From: Diadema antillarum
Lineage: Eukaryota
Reading direction: 5' to 3'
Assembly: GCF_040938485.1 (NCBI RefSeq)
Contig: NW_027271035.1
Span: 2,480,001-2,544,000, forward strand
Length of the DNA: 64,000 nt
Below the pieces are notes generated by a model. That model saw nothing but the letters and a program-made list of their open reading frames with translations, did no database searches and was not told where the DNA came from. Positions within the stretch are counted from its first letter, which is position 1, and each line of letters opens with the position of its first letter. Shown here piece after piece: positions 25,601 through 63,482 of the stretch. A program made the translations under genes and the position numbers.

Positions 25601-28600
25601 AGTCACACAGAAGAACAGTTTCCCTCAATGACTCAACACATATAATCACTTGGTAGCAACATACACTGTATATCTGTATTCACAGAAGGAGAAGAGAAAA
25701 TATAAACTTACTGTCATTGTTGTCTCTCTTCAGCTGTTCGAGAAGGAACTCAAGAGGATCCTGTGGTTTGCTTACGAGCAGTCCCTCGATCAAGTGCTGT
25801 ATGAGTGTAAGCATGTACATTTGAAGGAGAGGGTGTGTGTAGGCATATACACAAGAAAGAGAGAGGGGGGAAAGGAGAAAGAATGTAAGAAATTGTCATT
25901 CTTACTTTAGAGCTATTGCAACAATACATGACAAGACATGATATTTCGGTCTAAACCCTACTGCATTTCTGGATGACAATATCTCCAGAAGTCTATGTCA
26001 TCACTTGTCCACTCGTTCATGTTTTCACAGAAAGGACTGAACATCAGTGAAGTTGATAGTCTTGATTGACAAAGATCTATAGATTGAAATCATTTCGAAT
26101 GTTTTCAATTGATAATGATAATTCAATAATAATATATAACACTTATATAGCGCATAATACTGACGTTTCTAAGCTTTTACATAGCCAGTCTATTGTAGAT
26201 TGAGACAAATGATTGGTGTGTCACTTTGAAACATTGACAGGACACTATTCAAAGTCAGATCTAGATGCTGTGTATTGTACATTTATTTACAATGCTAAAT
26301 CTTAAAAGGGTGCATATACTGTAAAAATTTTAATTTTTCATCAATCTACGCTGTGTAATGTACATTTATTTACAATGCTAAATCTTAAAAGGGTGTATAT
26401 ACTGTAAAAATTTTAATTTTTCATCAATCTATGCTGTGTAATGTACATTTATTTACAATGCTAAATCTTATAAGGGTGTATATACTGTACAAATTTTAAT
26501 TTTTCATCAATCTACAGATATTTTCAGGGATGAAGAGGTCACAGACATTTTTGCAAACTGATGTTTTCAACTGACACCAAGGGTAATGTATTGTAATTGC
26601 GCAATTGCTGCCTGTCCATTCACTCTGCCACTTTACTGTAGAATACATGTACATGGTGATATTTTTGCATGTTGTAAAATAAGTGGCCCGACACCAACAG
26701 TGTTTCACAAAATTCACAAAAATTAAACCCTAGCAAAAATAACAGCTTTTACACTAAAAAGCTAATAGGGCTTACCTTGTCTAAATCTTAGCACTACATC
26801 CTGACTTATGGATCCTGCTGAGTATCTTCGTAGAAGTAGAAGTAGACTCTAGCAGGACATGTGCAGCAACATATACAAATCTACTTCAGCTGGTTCCATA
26901 TCGGGTAGATTTATAGTATGTAAATTACCAATGCTAAACATTAAACAGATACAGCATGAGCCATGACTGATTGACTCTGATTATCTGAAGTGAACAGTCA
27001 TTGTCACATTAAATTCTTGGCTTAACTGCAGAATATCGAAGCAGAATATTGCGTGTGCGTGGTGTGCGTGGTGTGCGTGGTGTTGGATCTCCCAATTCTC
27101 AATCATATTTATTTCCATTTCCTGTTGATTCGGTTTTTACAACATTATTGGACAGATTGACACTCTATACTTTTCATGTGGATTTTGCCAACGGATTGGA
27201 ATCCATCGTTTTTCTGAGCCCGACTAACAGAAAGGTGCTCACCAGGATGCTGGACAAGCCATGTCGTAGACAGTGAATCATAGTCCCATTGCATTCAACT
27301 GCGTGTATATAGTTTGCGGTGGATCTGCTCTGTGCTATATGGTTACGGACAGTCGCGGACAATTTTGACAAAGATGTAAGTTCAACACCACCTGACACTA
27401 TTTCTTACCTGGGGAGAGACCAACTCAGCTGATAGTCAGCGAGTCCCTCAATATTATCTTTGCACCTACACAAAACAGTATGATTTAATTCTATCAGAAC
27501 TTTTCTGGAATATATCATTCATGTGATCTCATGCAATAATATTGAACTGACTTAGCATTCTTTTTCTTGGAAAACCTGAACATACAAGACGTCATATCAT
27601 TTACGTCTTTCTTCTTGATATTTTGCCTGTGTCATCTCGATTACATATTCAATTCCCATTTTGATACGTACTTCAGAATTTCTATTTCATTCAAAATGGC
27701 TGGCCCCAACACCAGAGCCAAAACCAACGTAGACACCGCAATATATCAAGCTGCCCAGGATTATCTGGGATCCATACTGGGCCCTCTCCTGTTTCTTTTA
27801 TATATCAATGATTTATGTTATGTATCCTCCTTCTTTAATTTTGTGTTATTTGCTGATGATACCAATATTATTTCCTCTCACAGTGATTTTAAGTACCTTG
27901 TCTCTAAAACAAATACTGAGCTTGATAAAGTGTCTGAGTGGTTTGATGCTAATAAATTAATTGTTAATTACGAAAAGACAAGCGTTATGTATTTTCGTAA
28001 ACCCACAATATCTCATGTCTTAGATGAAGTTAAAATCAAGATGAATAATGTTCAATTATGTATATCAACATCAGTTAAATTTCTAGGTATTATACTTGAT
28101 GAAAAATTAAAATTTAACGAACACCGTTTTTTGATTTGTAACAAAGTTTCCAAAAATATTGGTATATTATGCAAATTACGTACTACGCTCCCTGAAAAGC
28201 AGCTATTTATGTTGTATAATTCTCTTGTCCTCCCATATTTACAGTATTGCACCATTACATGGGCAAATGCTGGTGTTACTCATTTAGATCCCATACACAA
28301 ATTGCAAAAGAAAGCTCTACGTATATACTCTAATTCTGCTTATTTTGCCCCTTCTCAGCCTCTATTTTTTCGTTTAAAAACCTTAACAATATATGATATT
28401 TATAGATTCAAAATCGCTAATTTAATGTTCTATGTTAATAATAATTTGGCACCAGTTAATATTTCTAATTTATTTCGCCACAATAAAGATGTTCACCAAT
28501 ATAATACTCGCTCACGTTTTAAATTCAATTATCCTGCAGCTAATAGTCACTCCATATTAAAATCTGTTAAGCATGCTGGTCCCCGTATCTGGAACAACCT

Positions 28601-29954
28601 TTCAAATGACATCGCTTCTTGTTCAACCATAACTTCTTTCAAATTTAAATTGAAGAATCTTTTGATTCATATATATAAAGAAAATAACCAAGTTCAATCA
28701 TTTTATTTGATTTGAATTCCAAAAGAATTTACAATAGTTATAATATATACTCATGAATTTTATTACCAAGAGGAATATATATGCATCATGTATGTGACTG
28801 TATTTATGGGGAGGGGGGGGGGGGAGGAGGCGCGGCGTCGAACTTCACTGGGCTAAGACCTCCTTACTTATTTTTTTCCATTTCAATGTATAGTATCTTC
28901 TGTGTTTTATGTACAATTTCAAACAGTTTATTATTTTACTTCATTTAAAAATTATGTTCACTTCGTCATGTACATGTACATGCATTCTATTTATCATTGT
29001 TATCTGGGGGCTTTACGCCTTTTCAAGCAATCGCTTTTTGTAGTCCCCGTTCTCCTCATCAATACTTCTTTTTTGTTTGCTATGTTGATCTCACAATGTA
29101 TTTGTTTTATGATGATTGAGATGAATAAACGAATTGAATTGAATTGAATTGAATTGAATTGAATATTCTGTCATGAGCTGAATGTGCGCAGTGCATGCAT
29201 GCGTGCATCCATACATAAGCTACACTTGTAGCAAGGGTAAGGTAGAATCAATTTTAGCTGTGTAGAGTGGTATGGTAATTGCAACCAGCACACATATATT
29301 AAAATTTATGTGCAACGATGTGACGGGCATTCTGCAGATGTTCCTTTTTTTTTTTTTTTTTTTGGCATTAATTTTGGGGTAGACCCGTACCTGTTAGACC
29401 CTAGAATATGGTCTAGATCCTATCTATTTCACAGACCACAATGTCATCATTCTACAACTATTGTAACAGTTAATGGACCCCATTATTTAACGTTAGAGTC
29501 TATAATAAATTTACGTGTTATGTAAAATCTATCCCATCTTTTCTACTCAAAAGAACAACCCGGCGCCTGCTCTGCAAACCAATGGAAACTTCAAAACTAT
29601 GATTTTCAAAAACATCTTTACTGATTCATTTTTATTTTGGTAGTGGGTTCTATAGTCTGATATTAATTAACAGATATTTCGGGATACGGCTTTGGCTCTG
29701 CCTTTGATTTAGCCACGGCCAGCCACTCTGGCTGCGATGACAATACAGCACACACAGTATTAAACGGGTGGGACCGTAATATCACTCAACACACAGTAAC
29801 AACGCACAACTTCAATAATTATCAAGTTTTTACAACAGATATCTTGGAAGTATACCAGTATTGCTCCTACCTTGTAAAGCTCAAATATGCCATGCCTTTC
29901 AGCATACGTTCCAAACTGAGGAGGGATTCTCAAAGGCTTTTTGGTTTGATCCAT
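19371..29954 (-). CDS. AK8: Adenylate kinase 8, 10 coding exons, 483 aa
   Basis: Exons in minus-strand order: 29871-29954, 25712-25796, 25035-25198, 24236-24386, 23302-23373, 22476-22679, 21869-22000, 21026-21115, 20441-20582, 19371-19698. All introns are GT-AG with consistent phases; total 1452 nt. N-terminus [17 protein letters not shown], a dimerisation-like helix ([13 protein letters not shown]) and two AK domains ([17 protein letters not shown]; [16 protein letters not shown]) match AK8 as I recall it. Confidence 0.95.
20074..20306. mobile_element. hAT-like MITE in AK8 intron 9
   Basis: CAGGGCTTGACA ... TGTCGAGCCCTG inverted termini; imperfect TSD. Confidence 0.55.
20441..20582 (-). CDS. 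AK8: AK8 exon 9
   Basis: [43 protein letters not shown]. Confidence 0.93.
21026..21115 (-). CDS. AK8: AK8 exon 8
   Basis: [30 protein letters not shown]. Confidence 0.9.
21869..22000 (-). CDS. AK8: AK8 exon 7 (P-loop 2)
   Basis: [32 protein letters not shown]. Confidence 0.93.
22476..22679 (-). CDS. AK8: AK8 exon 6
   Basis: [12 protein letters not shown]...[13 protein letters not shown]. Confidence 0.92.
23302..23373 (-). CDS. AK8: AK8 exon 5
   Basis: [24 protein letters not shown], 72 nt, phase 1-1. Confidence 0.92.
24236..24386 (-). CDS. AK8: AK8 exon 4
   Basis: [41 protein letters not shown]. Confidence 0.92.
25035..25198 (-). CDS. AK8: AK8 exon 3 (P-loop 1)
   Basis: [18 protein letters not shown]...AKGE. 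Confidence 0.92.
25712..25796 (-). CDS. AK8: AK8 exon 2
   Basis: [28 protein letters not shown]; acceptor catacag, donor gtaagt. Confidence 0.9.
26267..26515. repeat. 83-bp tandem repeat, 3 copies (AK8 intron 1)
   Basis: Units start at 26267, 26350 and 26433. Confidence 0.93.
27567..29163 (+). mobile_element. Partial CR1-group LINE in AK8 intron 1 (antisense to AK8)
   Basis: RT homology begins abruptly at [16 protein letters not shown] (27768), includes FADDT, and is open to 28715; the 3'UTR ends in a (GAATT)n tail at 29131-29163. Confidence 0.92.
29871..29954 (-). CDS. AK8: AK8 exon 1
   Basis: [28 protein letters not shown], donor gtagga, phase 0. Confidence 0.9.
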
Positions 29955-46500: not shown

Positions 46501-49500
46501 TGATGCACAGGATAGAGTGCGTTAGTGGAGGCGTATAGCGCACTCGAGGGTATTTACAATTGTGAAACATGCACGAGGCGAAGCCGAGTGCATGTTTCAC
46601 TACATTGTAAATACCCGAGAATGAGCTATACGCCTCCACTAACGCCACGAAATAATCCTGTGCATCATTTGTTTTATAAAATGGGTCGAAAATTCGAAAA
46701 CTAACAGCATTTTCAGCGTTTTTCACGTACCTTTGTGGGTCAAGACGTCCGAAGATGTTCGTCCCAAACATTTACGCACGTCGCACTCGGAAATCCCGCA
46801 CATATAAGTATGATGGGGGAGGGGGGGGGGGGTGGGTTTCCGGACACTTAAGTTCCCGCATGAAAACTTACTTATTTTACGTAGAATATGCACCCTTTAC
46901 CTTAAATACTTGATATAGACTCCTCATATAGGCCTACTAGACAACATACTTTGAAAACGGCGTGAGAATTAACCTGCTAAATCGTTGGATTTGCCCTTCA
47001 AAGTGACTCCATGTACGCGTCCGGTCCCACAACGCTTGGTCTACTGTACTGTACGTAAGAGTATACGTACGCCACACATATTATGCATGTATGCACAAGG
47101 GAAGAAAGGCCGGCCGGCCGGCAGCCCGAACTAGAAGATGTTTACAGGATTGACAGCGCGTATGTATGCAATTCAAAGGAGCCGCCGCGCGCACAGACGA
47201 TCGGCAATAGGATTTAACACGCAGTGCAATGGGACTAGAATAACCAAAGCACACGTGACTCATTTCAGCGCTTCCTATTGGCTACATTCTTGAACCCATT
47301 TTATAATATATAGTACGCATGGTCATGATGGTATATATGCGCCTACAGGCACTCAAGTATTATTATCATTATCAACATGATTTTTATCATTAATTATTAA
47401 TCTTATTATCATCATCGTCATAATTGTTATTATTGTCTTCATCATCATCATCATCATCATTCTTACCTTTCGTGTAGTCACAGCTCGGTAATTATGGCAC
47501 AGCAATAGTGTGATGCAGAAAGTAGAGGGTTTTTCTTCTAAGTTTCAATGCGAACAAAGAAAACTTAGTGAAAATCTGTGTGTTCATTCAAGTCGGTAGG
47601 AGACTTGGAAGACGAAGACACGTTTGAACGAATCTCATTTCTCCTTGTCGTCCACAGGGGTCGGCTACAGCGCTCTTGTGATTCTGGCGAACGCATGTCC
47701 TGCAGACTACTTCCCTGATTCCTTCCAAGTAGCCTCCAGCGTCCTCATTGCAGGAGGTGGCATAGGTAACATGATCCTACCGGTCGTCACCCAGTTAATC
47801 ACTGACGCTTATGGCTGGAAGTCGGCTCTCTTGATGCTAGGGGCTCTGAATCTCCACTCCGTCGTGTACGGCGCCCTCATCAAGCCCTCGAAACCTCAAG
47901 GGCGAGTCGCTGGTAACAATCCCGAACACGCTTACAAGCCGGTGTTCCTCGAGGAAGCCAAGTGGAACGAGTCTTCTTTCGTGAGCGCGAACATAACATA
48001 CTCCAGTACGATAGCAACCTCTCTGGAGGTCGAGGACTGCCTGTGTGACGAGGACAAAGAACAAACGCCCTCGATGGAAGCAAACGTATCTGCTTCGTCT
48101 TTGGAGTCGTCAGTGAATGAAGCCGATTGTACTTACTCGTCGAACTCGAAAGGGGATCGCGTAAACTTCACCATTGCTCCTGTTTCACCGAGAGATGACG
48201 AAAGTGAAGAGAGCTGTGCATCTGAAAGTCAAAGCTCACCAAAACGCGAAGACATGGCCTCAAGAGTTATATTCTTGGCGATGGATAGTTCAGAGCGAGG
48301 TAGGCCAATAATGTCTAAGTCGTCACTTGTAGAATTATCTACGCAAAATTCGACGGGGCATTCCCCTCGCACGAGGACGGTCGTATTACAATACGAAGGT
48401 CAGTGCAAACGACAATCGCAGACGTGTTGTTCACCGGTAGCAAGACGCGGCTTTACAACCTTCCTCAAGTCATTCGACTTTTATCTCTACAGAGATTTCC
48501 CTCTCGTATTCACCGTGCTCTCTATCAACGTCGTGCTCTATGCCGTCACCTACATCGCCTGGGTTGTTTTCCTCATCCCCAATGCCGAGGCCAAGGGCAT
48601 CCCGTCGGATGAGGCTGTCTTCTTGGCGACGATCGGTGGCGTTGCCGACATCGCCGGCCGATTCGTCGCCGGATTCATTGCGGAGAAGGTCTGGATGGAT
48701 AACGATGCTTTCTACGTCGTGATGAGCGTCGTGGCGGGAGTGGCATTCCTCATCAACTACCTCGCCTCGTCGTTCTGGTTCCTGGGAATCCTTGCTGCCC
48801 TCAACGGCTTCACTCTCGGAGTGAAGACGACCCTGATCAACATCCTAGTGAAAATCAAGATTCCCGACGACCGCTTCAAGGCGGCCCTGTCCATCATTTT
48901 CTTCGTCAGTGGTGTCGGTGCTCCTGTCAGTGGAATCGTTATGGGTGAGAAAGCAATTAATTGTTTGTCTAGACTTCAATTTACTCATCAGGTGCTGGGG
49001 GAATTTTGGTACAAAACTATCATCTTGCCATCTTTTAATCGGCACATTTGAATTTCACTGCAGATCTCTTAGACAAAGATTAACCTACTAAGATCAAATG
49101 ATTAAATTCATATAATCTACACAAAATCAGAAATAAAAAAAAATGTTCCAATTTGAGAGAGAAACAGAAACATTAGTCCTCTTCAAGAATCTTGCTAACT
49201 TAAGAGACAGTTATAGATATAGCTTTTAAAAGTTTCTCTTAAAAATTCTGCAACTGACAAGAACAACCACTATCAAATTATAAAAGGTTTCATTGAATGA
49301 GGGTTCTTTCTAAACTTTATGAGCCACTAACTAGTGAAAACTTCAAATCATAGTAAAAAGAGACAACGCCAAACCACGGAAAAACGATTTCTGTGATATG
49401 ATCGGTTACATGCAAAGAAGAAAGAAACAGAATGTTTTGCATTTTTAAATAAATTAATGTATGGAAGTGTTATTGAAGACAAATAAAGAATTTTGGCAAA

Positions 49501-55703: not shown

Positions 55704-58590
55704 TTGATATGTGTAAATTCTTTTTTAGAATCAATGGATAATATTCTGCATGTTATTAATGCTGAAAATAAATCTGTGTATTTGTTAGGTGATTTTAATT
55801 TGAATTTATTGGAGATATCTGTTTGTCATCATGTAAATAATTTTTTAGATTTATGCATGTCAAATAGTTTATACCCTTTGATTCATATTCCAACACGTGT
55901 TACACCCCAGTCAGCAACATTACTTGACAACATCTTTACCAACGTTCTTGATCAAGAAGTTGCAGGTGTACTCTTAGCAGATGTAAGTGATCATTTTCCT
56001 GTTTTTTCTGTGAGCAACATCTTATTGAAAAATAATAGTGATTCAGATATTTTTTTTACACGTGATATTAATTCTATGAATTGTGAGAAATTTGTTCAAG
56101 TGGTTAGCAACACGTGTTGGAATATTACACATGATAACTCAAATGATGCTTATAATGATTTTATTGAAAAGTTGACCAAAATATATTATGATTGCTTTCC
56201 TGTCAAGCGTGTTACAAATAAGAAAAAGTATATGCATAAGCCGTGGTTTAACACATCATTACGTAAACTTTGTAACAAAAAATGTATATTGTACAGGAAG
56301 TATGTTAAAAATCCAACTGAGTACAGATGTTTTAGGTACAAGCAATACAGAAATATGGTATCAAAAGAAATAAAGAAGGCTAAGATTTTGTATTTTAGAA
56401 ACAAATTTGAATCAGCTACAGGTAGTATGAAAAAAATGTGGAATATAGTTAGTGATATGCTTGGTACAAGAAAGAAGTCAAATGCCCTCCCTAATGTATT
56501 AAAGTGCAATAGTAAAACTGTAACTGGGCAAGATGATATATGTTTTGCTTTTAATCAGTTTTTTATTGATATTGGGCCCAAACTTGCCTCATCTTGTAAA
56601 CGAGTTGGTAATTATATGAGTAATATTAAAAGAAATGCAAGTAGTATTTTCTTTGAGCCATGTTCTCCTGATGAAATAATCCGGATTGTTAGTAATATTC
56701 AAAATGGTAAAAGTCCTGGGCATGATGAAATTGGTGTTCTGCCTATTAAAAAAGTTATTCATATTCTTTGTATTCCTTTATGTGAAATTTGTAATTTATC
56801 TATGTCAACTGGTGAAGTTCCTAATAATTTAAAAATTGCAAAAGTTATACCCATTCATAAAAATGAATCTAAGGACGATATATCAAATTATCGCCCTATA
56901 TCTATTCTTCCTTTATTTTCAAAAGTTCTCGAAAGATGTGTTTTTAATCGAGTAATAGATTTTTTAGAAAAGTGTAATATTATAACTGACAATCAATTTG
57001 GGTTTAGGCCAAAGTATTGTGTATCTTATGCATTAGTTGACTTTCTTTACAAAATATTGAATGCATTGGAAAAAAAAGAAATAACTATTGGATTATTTTT
57101 AGATCTTAGTAAGGCTTTTGATTCCCTTGATCATCATATTCTTTTAGATAAACTTTATTGTTATGGTATGAGAGGTATTGTATACAAATGGTTTCAAAGT
57201 TATTTGGATAATCGTAAACAATATGTATCAATTAATGGTTATACCTCTAATCAAAAGACAATTAAGTGTGGTGTTCCACAGGGGTCTATATTAGGCCCTT
57301 TGTTATTCATTCTGTATATTAATGATATATGTAATGTGTCTGATCGTTTAAAGTTTATTTTATATGCAGATGACACCAGTGTGTTCATGTCCAATTCTGA
57401 TATACAAATATTACAGGAACAATTTGCAAGTGAATTAAAAAAGCTAGTTTATTGGTTAGATATAAATAAGCTTGTTCTTAATATAAATAAAACAAATTTT
57501 ATGTTATTTTTAAACAAAAAAGTACATAATGATTTTGTTTATATTAAAATCAATGATGTTTTTATTAAACGTGTTCCATATGTTAAGTTTTTGGGTGTAA
57601 TAATTGATGAAAAATTGTCTTGGAACCAGCACACTGATGTTGTCTGCAACAAACTTGCAAAAAATATTGGTTTATTGTATAGATTTTATTCATATCCAAA
57701 AGAAGTTTTATTATTATTGTATAATTCTCTAATTCTGCCTTATTTGAATTATTGTATACAAATCTGGGCAAACTGTAGTGAACAAAATATGTTGAGGCTT
57801 TTTAAATTACAAAAGAAAGCAATCAGAATTGTATCTCATAGCGATTACCGTGCTCATACAATGCCAATATTTGATCGTCTGAAAATTCTTAATATTTATA
57901 ATATGTATATATATCAAAGTGCAATATTTATGTTTTCATGTTCTCATAATATGCTACCTGGAGTATTAACTAATTACTTTAAGCTCAATAGCCAGGTGCA
58001 TACATGTATAACAAGAAACTTTTTTAATTATCACTTGCCATTTGTAAGATTAAGCTCGTATCAAAAGTCAATATTTTATAATGGACCGAAAATATGGAAT
58101 GCGTTACCAGAGGAAATAAAGTCAAGTCAGACTTTTACGATTTTTAAAACCCATCTTAAGCAGTATTTAAGTGACAGACAATCTTTAGAATAAATGTATC
58201 ATAAAAAATATTTTTGATAAGATTATACATATACTTTTTGTTTAATGTGTTTGTGTGTCTATGTTTTGTTTTGTTTTTGTTTTTGTTTTTGTTTTTGTTT
58301 TTGTTTTTTTTGTGCTGCTGTTTGTAACTTTGTAATATATATGATATTCGTTTGGTACATGTTAAAGGACTTGGCTTCATATAAGGCACCGCCTTCCTGT
58401 CAAGTTCCTAATGCTTCATGATTTCTTATGTTGACGTTTATATTTTGTATCCGTTGCAGTCATATCAGTTATTTTATACAAATTTGACGACATGAATTTA
58501 AATGTTATGTATTTGTACTTATATGTAGTGTATTTTCTCTGTTTGTTTGTATGGTTTTTATGGAGTATTGAATAAATACAGAATCTCAAT
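55704..58590 (+). mobile_element. Non-LTR retrotransposon (CR1 group: L2/Crack/Daphne-like), 5'-truncated, with uninterrupted EN-RT ORF 55704-58193
   Basis: APE motifs GDFN, LDNIF, SDHFPV; RT motifs KSPGHD, NYRPISILP, QFGFR, FLDLSKAFD, GVPQGSILGP, YADD; 829 codons without a stop. AT-rich 3'UTR with AATAAA at 58571 and a short aatctcaatc tail. Confidence 0.95.
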
Positions 58591-58672: not shown

Positions 58673-59499
58673 ATGGCCAAAAGTCCAGAGCTGTGGCTGA
58701 AGAAGGTTGAAGAAGTCTCGGACAAGGGTGACATCCTGTGTAGTTTGAATAAAAACACGGTGCTGACCCACAGTAGCAAAGATGATAGACATTTCTACAG
58801 CAGGCTTAATGTGGCCAAGGGTACGGACACCGACATCGCCGGCTTCTCCGGGGATACGGTGATCGACAACTGCACGCGGTTCGGGCCCGACAGAGTCATC
58901 AATGTCGAGTCGGGGAACCGATTGATTATGTACAACGTGAACGGCCACTTCGTCAGCAACTTCACGATCAACAAGAATGGCAAACCTGCCAACGTTGATC
59001 AGATCACCGCCGTTGCTGTCGCTGATGACGTCGTGTTCGTCGCCGAGTTCAAACGCTACAACGGAAACATCCTCGTGGTGAAATACGCCACCGGGGAAGC
59101 TGCCATGTCCCTGCCCGTCGACGAGAAGGTGAAAGCGATCATCCCTGTGAGTACGGGCTTGATCCTCGTGCGGTTCAAGGAACGTATTGTCGCGATGGAT
59201 TTCTACAACTACCCTCGCGTCGACACCACTCCCGTAATGACAGTCGGGCGGACGCTCGTCAACACTTGCGTCAAAGGACCTCACGACGAAGTGTACGTAC
59301 TTTTCGTCAAGGGCATCACGCCAAAGGTGCTCGAAGTCGTCGTGCTTGACGACAGCTACGAAGAGATCCGGCGAACAAAAATCACACACACCATGTCAAT
59401 CCTAAGTCTGAGGGCGTTGTTCACGTCTTCAGCTGGTTATCTCATCATACAGATGGGCAACATCATACACATCTACAAATCCATGATGGAAGGACTCAA
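58673..59499 (+). CDS. Propeller exon (NHL/6-blade beta-propeller-like)
   Basis: Blade-like segments NRLIMYNVNGHFVSNF, ITAVAVADDVVFVAE and ALFTSSAGYLIIQMGNIIHIY; GC-rich codon usage like the other true exons here. Confidence 0.85.
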
Positions 59500-62029
59500 G
59501 TGAGTCATTTATTTCCACTTTGATGTGTTGCACTGCGAAGTCTGTGGTATTCTCCTTGAAATATGTATGTAATGATTATCCACACCTCAACACATCGTCT
59601 CTCTTGAAAATCAGATCAGATCATGGACAGCTCTTTGATGGTCTTTGAATACAAAGACTTTCATGGAGATATAATTTGTCAATCATAACCTCAGAAAGTG
59701 CCTGTTTGTTCCCACAGATGATGATTGATCTGGTTCCATGACATTTGCTCCTGCGACAATTACTCCCATGATATATCTGCATGCTAAGCCAAACGTAAAT
59801 TCAACCCATAAACATAACCCTAACCCTAATCCTAATTCTCACATCAAACTAAACCTAAAACCCTATCACAACCCTAACCCTAACCCTAAGTCCTTAGAGA
59901 AAATAAGACCGGAGCAATTGTCGCAGGAGCAAATGTCGTGTCACCATTGATCTATATCTATGTGTCTTGTCAGACAGGATATGAACAAAGGCTCTTGTCA
60001 CAGTAAACAGCTAGCATGTAAAGCGTTGCTTGGAAAATTGCCTTAATCCTGATTATTGGAGTGACTTTCAGAAATTGATTAAACTAACAATCTTAGGAAG
60101 GACGCCAGTTACCTGTTGCGTGAAGACGGTTTAACACACACGTATCAATTCTAATTTGGTGTCGTTGAAATGCACACAGTCAAGTCTAATGCACTCTACT
60201 GACTGGAAATGTAATAAGGATAACCATGAAATATACACGCCAGAAGGATTTACACGCCATAATGATAATCATGAAATATGTGTTTTGAGAGAATAATCCT
60301 CCCATTCTCATAAAGACTGCTTTCCTGTCCAGAAATTAATGTTGTCTATTCTTAAACAAAGTAATGATGTAACATTTTCAGGAAAAGCAAAACGCCCGGA
60401 AGAGAGGCAAGTGGTAAACGTCCGAGGAGGAAGTTGTTCGCCGATAACACCGTCCGCTCCGACCCTAAGAATCCTCAACGAGATACCAGTCAAGAACAAG
60501 TGTAAGTCGTTTGACTCACTGCGAATGAGAACAGACAGTGCATAGCAAAGGATGAATCTATATAGAAATGACCTTACAGGAGAGGCAGATGGTTAAACCG
60601 TTATTGTAGTGCTTATTTGCCATGGAGCTATGACATTTGGCTCATATGATTTGTAACAGTAAATGCGGAGACGTAGAGGATGCAACTCTGTGATTCCTAT
60701 GAATGAATTTTCGATTAGATCTCAACTAAAAAAAAAAAAAAGCGTTTTCTACCCCCACCAAGGGAAAAATGCATAATGACTATCTTTATAATTCCCATTG
60801 TTGCAATCGTACACGTCACAATGATCATTCCGATGAAATTATGCGGTCAATCATGCTGTTTGGTCTTAAGACTGTCATGGTTAGGCATAATCTTTACACA
60901 GCAGAGTTAAAAGAATATACAAAAAAAATATGAAACATAACAATTTGTGTTATCATTGCAACTGATCGACAACCAGTTACAATGAAAACACCTCAACGGA
61001 AGAATTTCATGCATTTGAAAAATTTGTATTATGTTTCATTTGGCCGGCAATAAATTGCCGGCCTTGTATACTATATTACGGAGTTTCATGGCAAGTTTTC
61101 TTTTTTTTTCCCTGTACACGTGAATCTACCATGTTTGAGATAGACCACTTTGGTAAATAATGAAATTTGATCCAGGTAAATGATTGTGATAATCCTTTCC
61201 GAAATAACAAAACGATATGGGTGATTCTCCTTTACTGCAAACAAAAATGATAAACGAACAAAATTCTGCAACACTGAAAGGAGTTGTACATAATGCTTAT
61301 CCCTCCACACAGTGAGAAGAAAACGCCAATTGAGTCAAAAGAAGACAAGGACCCTCCAGCTGAGACCTTGACAGCACAGAACATTGGACCTGTTCTTGTG
61401 GAGACCAACCATGAAGCAAAAGAACCCGACAGAACACAAACTTCCAGTGACATGTAAGTCTTCACACTATAAACTATAATGTCATCAAATTTAAAGAAAA
61501 ATGGCTTTCCGTTCTGAGTATGTTCTGTATGTTTCATTTAATTGATGTCGCTTCACATCAGTCGCAGGAAATAAGGTAATGTGGGTATACTATTCTTTCT
61601 TTATTCTACAAGCTTCCTTTAACAAACATTCTACAGGCTTCATTTTTTTATGGTGCTCTATCTTTCCATTCTGATTTTACCAATACATAATTATTAGTGT
61701 TTCATAAGAAAGTGTAAGATATTTTGTGCTGTCTAGCCGACAATGTAGGTAGGTTGTCGAAGATAATGAAGTGGAAAACATCATGTTGTCTTTGTTTCGT
61801 TGTTTTTATTTACAAGAAATGGAAAAGAACAGGAGAAAAGGGAGAATGAGGGAGAAAAACAAAAGAAGGACAGTTCTAATAGGAGTGCTTCAAAACATTT
61901 TGGCCCCGGCCCCGGCCCCAGCACCGGCACCAGCAGTGACACAGGACCTGTGCTACTTGAGACGAAAGAAAAACCAGAAAAACGACGGTAATATAAATAT
62001 GATATAATTTTATGTATATGTATATGAAT

Positions 62030-62110
<81 letters not shown>

Positions 62111-63482
62111 TTCCAAACATCGATAAAGGTATAATGCAGATTGCCCAGGCTGCATTAGCACTTACGTTTGTCAGTAACCAATAGATTATTTTAAAGAAGA
62201 GAAAAATCTGGATTGGATAACACATTGTGGAGTTTTTGTAAGCATTACATTCAGCTTATCTCTCTGTTTTGTAGTCCTCAAGGAACTCCAGGGAGGGAAA
62301 AGGAGGATACCTTGTCGCAAGAAATGGGAGAGAAATTGACCATCGCAACCAAACAAACGATCCCACCTCTGGAGTTGGATAGGAATGAAGCAGGTAACCT
62401 TAAGTGAAGTCAAACATGTTAGGGGTTATCATGCACTCTGTCTTTGCGTGTNNNNNNNNNNNNNNNNNNNNNNNNNNNNNNNNNNNNNNNNNNNNNNNNN
62501 NNNNNNNNNNNNNNNNNNNNNNNNNNNNNNNNNNNNNNNNNNNNNNNNNNNNNNNNNNNNNNNNNNNNNNNNNNNNNNNNNNNNNNNNNNNNNNNNNNNN
62601 NNNNNNNNNNNNNNNNTGCTGGAGACGAAAGCCGGTGGTCCCACTCCTATTCATGGGTTTCAGAATCATCAAACTCGATTGTGGAACAATTAGTGTAATA
62701 AGGAGCAATTGTGTTTGGAGTCCTGCTCCTATGACGTCAAACAACAACTTAAGTGTATTTTGCAACATGCATTATACATGGTCAAGATGTCATGGTGGAA
62801 GAAACAGCCATGTGTCGATGAGAAATGGTTTATGTGGCTTTTGCTGTCGGGGTTAAGGGCTTTTTGGACGCTACCAACCGTGCCTATGGCTTTAGGAATC
62901 CTTTTCTTCTCCATTTATATTGTGCACACTATTTAGTCTCAGACTTTTCACTACATTTTTGGACGAAAAGGTTAGTTTAAGTTTGAAGGTTAAAAACCTT
63001 TAGATCTTGAGCTACTTGCCATGATGTCACTTTCTGTCGTTGTGATAACCCTTGAAAACAAGTTGCAAACACTCAGTGTATTTGCTTCATATCTGATCTA
63101 TGCCAAAAATATCTTAATTACAACACAGGGAGGGCTAGCCCCGTCTTCGTATCCAAGTACATAGGCACGGAAGGTGGAGAGATCTCGAGCAAGACGTACG
63201 GGTTCTCTCTCAAGGTACCACCAGGCGCCATCCCGCGAGGTCAGAGGAAGAAGATCGGCGTCGAGCTGTCGAGAGAATCTGGCGGCTCGGCGGCGGCGGG
63301 CAGCGGCTTCTGCATTTCGCCCGACGTCCACTTCACTCCAGCGGGAATGATGCTGGAGAAGCCCGCCACGCTGACCCTACCCCACAGCCTCAGCTCGTGG
63401 TCGCAGGACATGGAGGTCTTCGTCCACCATGAGGATGACGCCGTCAGGACCGGCGGAAATGGAGCACAGAGGCTTTCCCGGC
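58673..63482 (+). CDS. Unnamed protein: NHL-like beta-propeller + charged linker + ZU5 domain (partial, 3' end not resolved)
   Basis: Exons 58673-59499, 60382-60501, 61313-61453, 61817-61987, 62275-62393, 63129-63482 join without stops (intron phases 2,2,2,2,1,1; all GT-AG; at least 577 aa). The acceptor at 58624 and an in-frame stop upstream of the ATG suggest a non-coding first exon (candidate donor at 54834). Confidence 0.78.
59732..59945. mobile_element. MITE with 8-bp TSD and internal telomere-like (AACCCT)n
   Basis: TSD ATTGATCT at 59724-59731 and 59946-59953; GG..CC termini; perfect 22-bp inverted core GACATTTGCTCCTGCGACAATT. Confidence 0.85.
62031..62104. repeat. Compound (CA)n(TA)n microsatellite
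   Basis: Direct reading. Confidence 0.95.
63129..63482 (+). CDS. ZU5-domain exon
   Basis: SKYIGTEGGEISSKTYGFSLKVPPGAIPRG...CISPDVHFTPAGMMLEKPATLTLPHS fits the ZU5 pattern (GGxL, lxiPpGAl, lSPvv..gP.G..f.kPv.LtlPH); symmetric phase-1 exon of 354 nt. Confidence 0.9.

Follow-up and report, generated by a model that had tools for sequence, protein, structure and literature searches.

Proteins in which a ZU5 domain is followed by a death domain are known from several well described systems. PIDD1 has the order LRR-ZU5-ZU5-UPA-death domain and is cytosolic; its N-terminal repeat scaffold comes first and its death domain last. The ankyrins (ANK-ZU5-ZU5-UPA-death domain) are soluble adaptors with ANK repeats as N-terminal scaffold and a C-terminal ZU5/death-domain module. 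In the UNC5 receptors ZU5, a spacer and a death domain follow one another behind a signal peptide, an Ig/TSP1 ectodomain and a transmembrane segment. Six-bladed propellers of approximately 275 aa are in turn found in the TRIM-NHL proteins (Brat, Mei-P26, TRIM2/3/71), together with RING, B-box and coiled coil. Here we analyzed a stretch of 64,000 nucleotides of the sea urchin Diadema antillarum (NCBI RefSeq assembly GCF_040938485.1, contig NW_027271035.1, positions 2,480,001 to 2,544,000 of the forward strand), referred to as the window, and within it a gene which combines elements of these systems.

The window holds the 5' two-thirds of a single sea-urchin protein-coding gene, the counterpart of XP_071477496.1 and of LOC100892972 of Strongylocentrotus purpuratus. 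Judged from sequence, this one gene very probably encodes, in this order, a propeller-like domain, a linker, a ZU5 domain and a death domain. The complete reading, namely a single gene with a propeller domain and a ZU5-spacer-death domain part whose product would work as a sensor or adaptor, is the one towards which we lean.

The chain of six in-frame exons proposed by the initial annotation was re-derived from the DNA (Table 1). AG acceptors and GT donors bound the exons (donors in order: GTGAGT, GTAAGT, GTAAGT, GTAATA, GTAACC and GTAAGT) and the exon phases match throughout (2, 2, 2, 2, 1, then 1 out). The chain consists of 275+39+46+56+39+117 whole codons plus 5 junction codons and contains no stop. 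The G+C content of the exons was 0.46-0.63, compared with 0.38 in intron 1 and 0.39 in the whole window. The start codon is credible: 18 nt before the ATG the frame is interrupted by a stop, and MAK is the first tripeptide of every homolog. A scan for bacterial promoters and terminators upstream of the ATG found nothing, this type of scan being irrelevant for a eukaryote. At the other end the frame runs up to the last donor (63483) without closing, as noted before. Without splicing it would reach a stop after 9 further codons, and therefore the gene must run beyond the window.

Table 1. Coordinates of the exons of the gene and of the assembly gap within the window.
Feature	Position	Strand	Description
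Exon 1	58673..59499	+	Start codon and whole 275-aa N-terminal domain; phase-2 donor AAG/GTGAGT
Exon 2	60382..60501	+	Basic linker segment (KSKTPGREASGKRPRRKLFAD...); in phase; corresponds to P0002 residues 275-316
Exon 3	61313..61453	+	Acidic/polar linker with the motif IGPVLVET; in phase; found in P0002
Candidate exon 4	61817..61987	+	171 nt, in frame, weak donor GTAATA; absent from P0002
Exon 5	62275..62393	+	Final linker exon; corresponds to P0002 residues 364-403
Assembly gap (N)	62452..62616		Within intron 5, outside the coding sequence of the model
Exon 6	63129..63482	+	ZU5 domain; open phase-1 donor GTAAGT; corresponds to P0002 residues 403-520

An exact look-up identified the public model of the gene as XP_071477496.1 (here P0002), an uncharacterized protein of D. 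antillarum with 804 aa. According to tblastn its junctions are those of the window for exons 1, 2, 3, 5 and 6, with identities of 98.9% (exon 1, residues 1-276), 92.9% (exon 2), 93.6% (exon 3), 97.5% (exon 5) and 100% (exon 6), and the residues computed for the junction codons (K, V, I and G) are identical to those of P0002. The assembly gap is located wholly inside intron 5 (62394-63128). Since P0002 runs from exon 5 into exon 6 with no residue unaccounted for, the gap hides no coding sequence of the model and the frame is unaffected. Beyond the window P0002 continues with a conserved spacer and then the death domain.

The same domain order was present in two further urchins. The relevant proteins in the full representative scan with exon 1 were P0002 (804 aa, 99%), P0003 (813 aa, 51%) and the fragment P0004. 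P0003 belongs to the cluster of S. purpuratus LOC100892972, which also has the isoforms P0007 and P0008 (861 and 858 aa), and a word-index search identified LOC121429753 (P0013) as the ortholog in Lytechinus variegatus. P0007, P0008 and P0013 all showed the identical order. Word-index and full representative searches together found six full-length proteins and four fragments; homologs of exon 1 shared 51-56% identity. Each species had one or two copies. The initial annotation had called such shuffling typical of invertebrate innate-immune expansions; with these numbers no expansion is visible.

A second S. purpuratus protein, the paralog P0014 (LOC105439363, 692 aa), was found by word-index search and is without a death domain. 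Its propeller is 90% identical, the GPVL motif described below is missing and within the spacer some 40 residues are duplicated. This copy may be in decay or incorrectly modelled.

A homolog of exon 1 was also located on an ENA contig (L001) from a further species, its identity being 56% with the window and 64% with S. purpuratus. It ends with AG/GTAAGC in phase 2 and has a stop codon within the donor, as in the window. The contig also carries a basic exon at approximately 1969-2108 in a frame matching exon 2 (KGTGKSRRNSGKMRNKFY... compared with KSKTPGREASGKRPRRKLF... in the window) and an exon with GPILLESKE. At its 3' end (3190-3749), units resembling CCCCACYAGGACAACT form an imperfect tandem array, and a poly-T run is present at 2890-2930. 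The 3' repeats are repeat-rich intron sequence after the GPILLES exon.

Several points weigh against a single gene. The evidence for all junctions consists of phase, conservation and public models derived computationally. Exon 1 is at the same time a complete stand-alone ORF of 276 aa (58673-59503) with a stop codon of its own (59501-59503). Furthermore, an older annotation of S. purpuratus contained two genes, LOC100892972 (413/416 aa, N-terminal domain and linker) and LOC594757 (433 aa, ZU5 to death domain). Accordingly, the 276-aa ORF could be a small propeller protein standing alone, perhaps with some of the linker exons, the ZU5-death-domain part could be a separate gene, and the in-frame chain could be a modelling artefact. 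However, the stop of the ORF overlaps a consensus donor, the same arrangement and phase are kept in L001 at 56% protein identity, and homologous linker exons follow there downstream in matching frame. The older N-terminal model already spanned the linker and the older C-terminal model LOC594757 overlapped the linker of the merged one, and for this reason the former split reads as an assembly break. Current RefSeq models of three species, each of a different genus, join the N-terminal domain to ZU5 and death domain, and all five junction codons of the window reproduce the residues of P0002 exactly. Two separate genes are thus very improbable, and the junction of a propeller-like domain via a charged linker to ZU5 within one gene, as proposed initially, is borne out by the shared junctions of P0002 and the conserved order in the orthologs.

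Candidate exon 4 is the least certain member of the chain. It fits in frame and phase, as annotated, but is not used by the public model P0002, which joins exon 3 to exon 5; owing to its length of 171 nt, skipping preserves the frame. Exon 4 and exon 3 have a common core and exon 4 bears a second copy of GPVLxET, which suggests that it arose long ago by tandem duplication of exon 3. A weak match to contig L001 was found at 3110-3151 (E 0.001). The candidate exon may be in use as a cassette, or the duplicate may be in decay. A GGCCCC/GGCACC repeat at 61902-61935 within the candidate exon encodes GPGPGPSTGTS, and a (CA)18(AT)23 microsatellite is located just downstream in intron 4 (62031-62110).

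The N-terminal domain of approximately 270 aa is an orphan by sequence, known only from a few sea urchins and from unassigned environmental contigs. Beyond the urchin proteins no relatives were found among 1.84 billion cluster representatives. No Pfam family was significant, either with the single sequence or with all 5 members. None of the 5 members matched NHL (PF01436) at E up to 10, the Pfam family WD40 (PF00400) was not matched and none of the other propeller families was significant by sequence. Comparisons with the PDB by sequence or by profile were likewise without significant match, the best in the profile search being the NHL domain of Thin with a sub-threshold E of 0.075. The sub-threshold sequence matches were mostly to propeller families, namely PQQ_2, WDR36 (E 0.029, one member), COPA, Thin NHL and a WD40 protein. 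The search of the whole library gave a weak match to a WD40 protein (E 6.8e-04). Its two weakest matches, both with E ~7e-4, were a WD40 protein (P0005) and a bacterial protein of Ig-like repeats (P0006), and were treated as repeat-driven noise.

The initial annotation had expected a six-bladed propeller for aa 1-275, and the best AlphaFold2 model, of moderate confidence, indeed matches six-bladed propellers. This model, calculated with 7 sequences, had a pLDDT of 61.9 and a pTM of 0.64 and consists of 21 strands without a helix; residues 66-272 were at a pLDDT of ~70-84. The strands are spaced at ~4 per 40-45 residues, and N-terminal strands are available for closing the last blade. The six-bladed beta-propeller, a ring closed by six antiparallel sheets of four strands each, is seen in the predicted model only.

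Comparison of the model with solved structures by VIA-align placed the NHL domain of Brat on top (Z 18.0, rmsd 3.6 A, 234 of the 279 residues of Brat NHL). Mei-P26 NHL (Z 17.0), the YWTD domain of ApoER2 (16.9) and TRIM2 NHL (16.6) followed, and then phytase, LRP4 and gluconolactonases. Beta-propellers, many of them six-bladed, made up most of the 50 listed rows; Z was 15-18 to many six-bladed propellers, over 208-243 residues. In Foldseek the recognised rows were WD40, NHL or other propellers with a TM of 0.44-0.58 for most rows; the maximum of 0.58 again belonged to Brat NHL. The TRIM-NHL propellers are hence the best structural matches (Z 15.7-18.0, ~230 residues), with YWTD and SGL-type propellers scoring nearly as well against the model. 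Unlike in the TRIM-NHL proteins, the domain found here has no NHL repeat by sequence, is located at the N-terminus and is not accompanied by RING, B-box or coiled coil. The sequence gives no support for placing it in the NHL repeat family, and the likeness is at the fold level only. The NHL-type propeller of the initial annotation consequently stood with respect to the fold, given the AlphaFold2 model and its best match, and did not stand with respect to the sequence.

A number of observations weigh against a propeller. The fold model rests on only 7 sequences, its first 65 residues had a pLDDT below 50, and just one of the five models of this run reached a pLDDT of 62, the other four staying below 52. 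A first run with 5 sequences gave a pLDDT of 41; with a Foldseek TM of only ~0.2 to propellers this model was rejected as evidence of a closed fold. No internal repeat was detected by hhalign self-comparison. Together with the lack of a significant propeller family by sequence, this would suit another all-beta fold, the propeller being what AlphaFold produces by default when a strand-rich sequence comes with a shallow alignment. We regard this as unlikely, since the best model closes and superposes on Brat NHL as given above, the number and spacing of the strands fit and the weak sequence matches are mostly propellers. On the basis of the model the N-terminal domain is probably a six-bladed beta-propeller.

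The linker between the propeller-like domain and ZU5 is 130-190 aa long. With 36% charged residues and no match to a Pfam family it is the charged linker that had been described. It contains a basic patch, KRPRRK, and a conserved motif, [FI]GP[VI]L[VLF][ED][ST], which was found in P0002, P0007 and P0013; the related GPILLES is present in L001.

Exon 6 encodes the ZU5 domain that was recognised before on the last exon. Pfam ZU5 (PF00791) matched with an E of 7e-13 and 49.1 bits (cut-off 21) over profile positions 2-96 of 97. By sequence the exon matched the ZU5 structures of UNC5B (E 2.5e-07) and ZO-1, whereas the matches to ankyrin ZU5 were weak (E 0.02-1). The phmmer alignment to UNC5B stops at chain residue 163. 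ZU5 is followed by a spacer of ~215 aa, which is strongly conserved among the urchins and is placed where UPA is found in other proteins. By its position the spacer is a likely candidate for UPA.

The death domain suspected downstream of the window was found in P0002, C-terminal to ZU5, with 25 bits compared with a cut-off of 22.6 for Pfam Death. Here again some results speak against the proposed module. The death domains of the orthologs from the other two species reached 20-22.2 bits and thus stayed just under the same cut-off. A sequence comparison of the death domain with the PDB gave no match, and it thus has no close solved relative. UPA was not matched in the spacer by Pfam at E up to 10.

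The UniRef cluster of P0007 and P0008 bears the automatic name "Netrin receptor UNC5". The urchin protein resembles the UNC5 receptors in its order of ZU5, spacer and death domain, and UNC5B is the best solved match to exon 6. Nevertheless, neither a signal peptide nor a membrane segment was detected. The N-terminus is hydrophilic. Among windows of 19 residues the highest hydropathy was 1.27-1.73, in a strand region with K and E. An Ig/TSP1 ectodomain is missing as well; Pfam finds only ZU5 and Death, and the N-terminus is instead a predicted cytosolic propeller. Because signal peptide and membrane segment are absent, the protein is not an UNC5 receptor, and the UniRef name misdescribes the protein as a whole. 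The best reading of the sequence is a soluble, cytosolic product.

With PIDD1 the urchin protein would share the cytosolic location, an N-terminal scaffold in first position, the ZU5 module and the terminal death domain. It differs in that its scaffold is a predicted propeller and not LRR, in that only one ZU5 is detectable and not two, and in its long disordered linker before ZU5. A conserved self-cleavage motif of the HFS type is also missing. The candidate site HFT (63332-63340) occurs only in Diadema, lies in the middle of ZU5 and is replaced by ICS in the other urchins. No [HS]F[STC] motif was found in P0007, P0013 and P0014, and no conserved HFS or SFS is present at the end of ZU5. In PIDD, on the contrary, each ZU5 is immediately followed by its cleavage site (PMC3210808), and so there is no support for cleavage of the PIDD type in the urchin protein. 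The ankyrins are similar in their N-terminal repeat scaffold, the C-terminal module and their nature as soluble adaptors, and different in having ANK repeats where the urchin protein has a predicted propeller; again, a single ZU5 is found here, with weak matches to that of the ankyrins.

The best reading by analogy is thus a cytosolic scaffold built like PIDD or ankyrin. The propeller could serve as binding face for a ligand or a partner. The flexible charged linker would separate it from ZU5, and its conserved GPVL-type motif could be a docking site. ZU5, spacer and death domain may represent the signalling end, as suggested by the modules of UNC5B, ankyrin and PIDD, and the death domain, when set free or concentrated, might recruit further death-domain proteins. 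Release on binding is plausible, since the ZU5-UPA-death-domain module of UNC5B (3g5b) is reportedly closed on itself. As a mechanism, such a sensor or adaptor is tentative and in our estimate falls somewhat short of even odds. An immune or cell-death role is what we infer from these analogies, and may apply here.

A more specific version would make the orphan propeller a cytosolic receptor, particular to this lineage, whose ligand derives from a pathogen or from damage. Binding would free an autoinhibited ZU5-spacer-death-domain part and lead to a PIDDosome-like death-domain signalosome, with GPVLxE[ST] as docking or processing site. By analogy this can be imagined, yet we consider it improbable.

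The same architecture might alternatively have a structural role like that of ankyrin or ZO-1. The protein would then connect the target of the propeller with a partner at the membrane or in the cytoskeleton, and would have no part in immune or death signalling. Ankyrin ZU5 binds spectrin. ZO-1 and UNC5B are the best solved matches to the ZU5 profile, the conserved PIDD-type motif is absent, and the gene occurs in one or two copies per genome and not as a lineage-specific expansion. Moreover, its sequence is well conserved across distant urchins, which suits housekeeping better than an arms race; low copy number and good conservation together argue against an arms-race expansion. On the other hand, the C-terminal death domain was kept in three species, and the layout of repeat scaffold, ZU5 and death domain fits PIDD as well (PMC3210808). 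We regard a structural role as less likely than not; it deserves more weight than the receptor model of the preceding paragraph, and the observations suit either role.

Apart from the gene, several other features were present in the window. Intron 1 contains at 59731-59946 an inverted repeat of 36 nt (89% complementary) around 144 nt, in which an (AACCCT)n array of degenerate, telomere-like repeats is found (59803-59889). The whole resembles a small foldback element bearing interstitial telomeric repeats. Directly upstream of the gene start and on the same strand, an ORF of 829 aa (55704-58193, +) with a match to the reverse transcriptase family RVT_1 (E 1e-32) looks like a non-LTR retrotransposon. 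A second reverse transcriptase fragment is located at 27567-28715. Two intronless ORFs of ~380 aa (982-2124 and 8411-9550, both +) matched rhodopsin-family seven-transmembrane receptors (7tm_1, E 1e-35 and 3e-31) and look like a tandem pair of G protein-coupled receptor genes. An ORF of 475 aa (47624-49051, +) matched transporters of the Major Facilitator Superfamily (MFS_1, E 7e-17).

The initial annotation regarded the domain architecture as unrecognised. This holds insofar as our literature searches found no description of a propeller-ZU5-death-domain protein; the proteins themselves already have RefSeq entries, labelled uncharacterized, for three urchin species. Shuffled death-domain architectures, in which repeat scaffolds are fused to death-fold adaptors, are well known in marine invertebrates (PMC8195603). 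For both reasons the find is unsurprising in kind.

ZU5-(UPA)-death-domain modules are known behind the ectodomain of the UNC5 receptors, the ANK repeats of the ankyrins and the LRRs of PIDD, and the predicted six-bladed propeller would represent a fourth kind of partner. Diadema and Strongylocentrotus, which belong to distant urchin lineages, both retain the architecture. The orphan propeller may have arisen de novo, as a fast-diverged NHL domain or from something else. The gene thereby offers a compact and testable case of how death-fold adaptors may gain new input domains in invertebrates.

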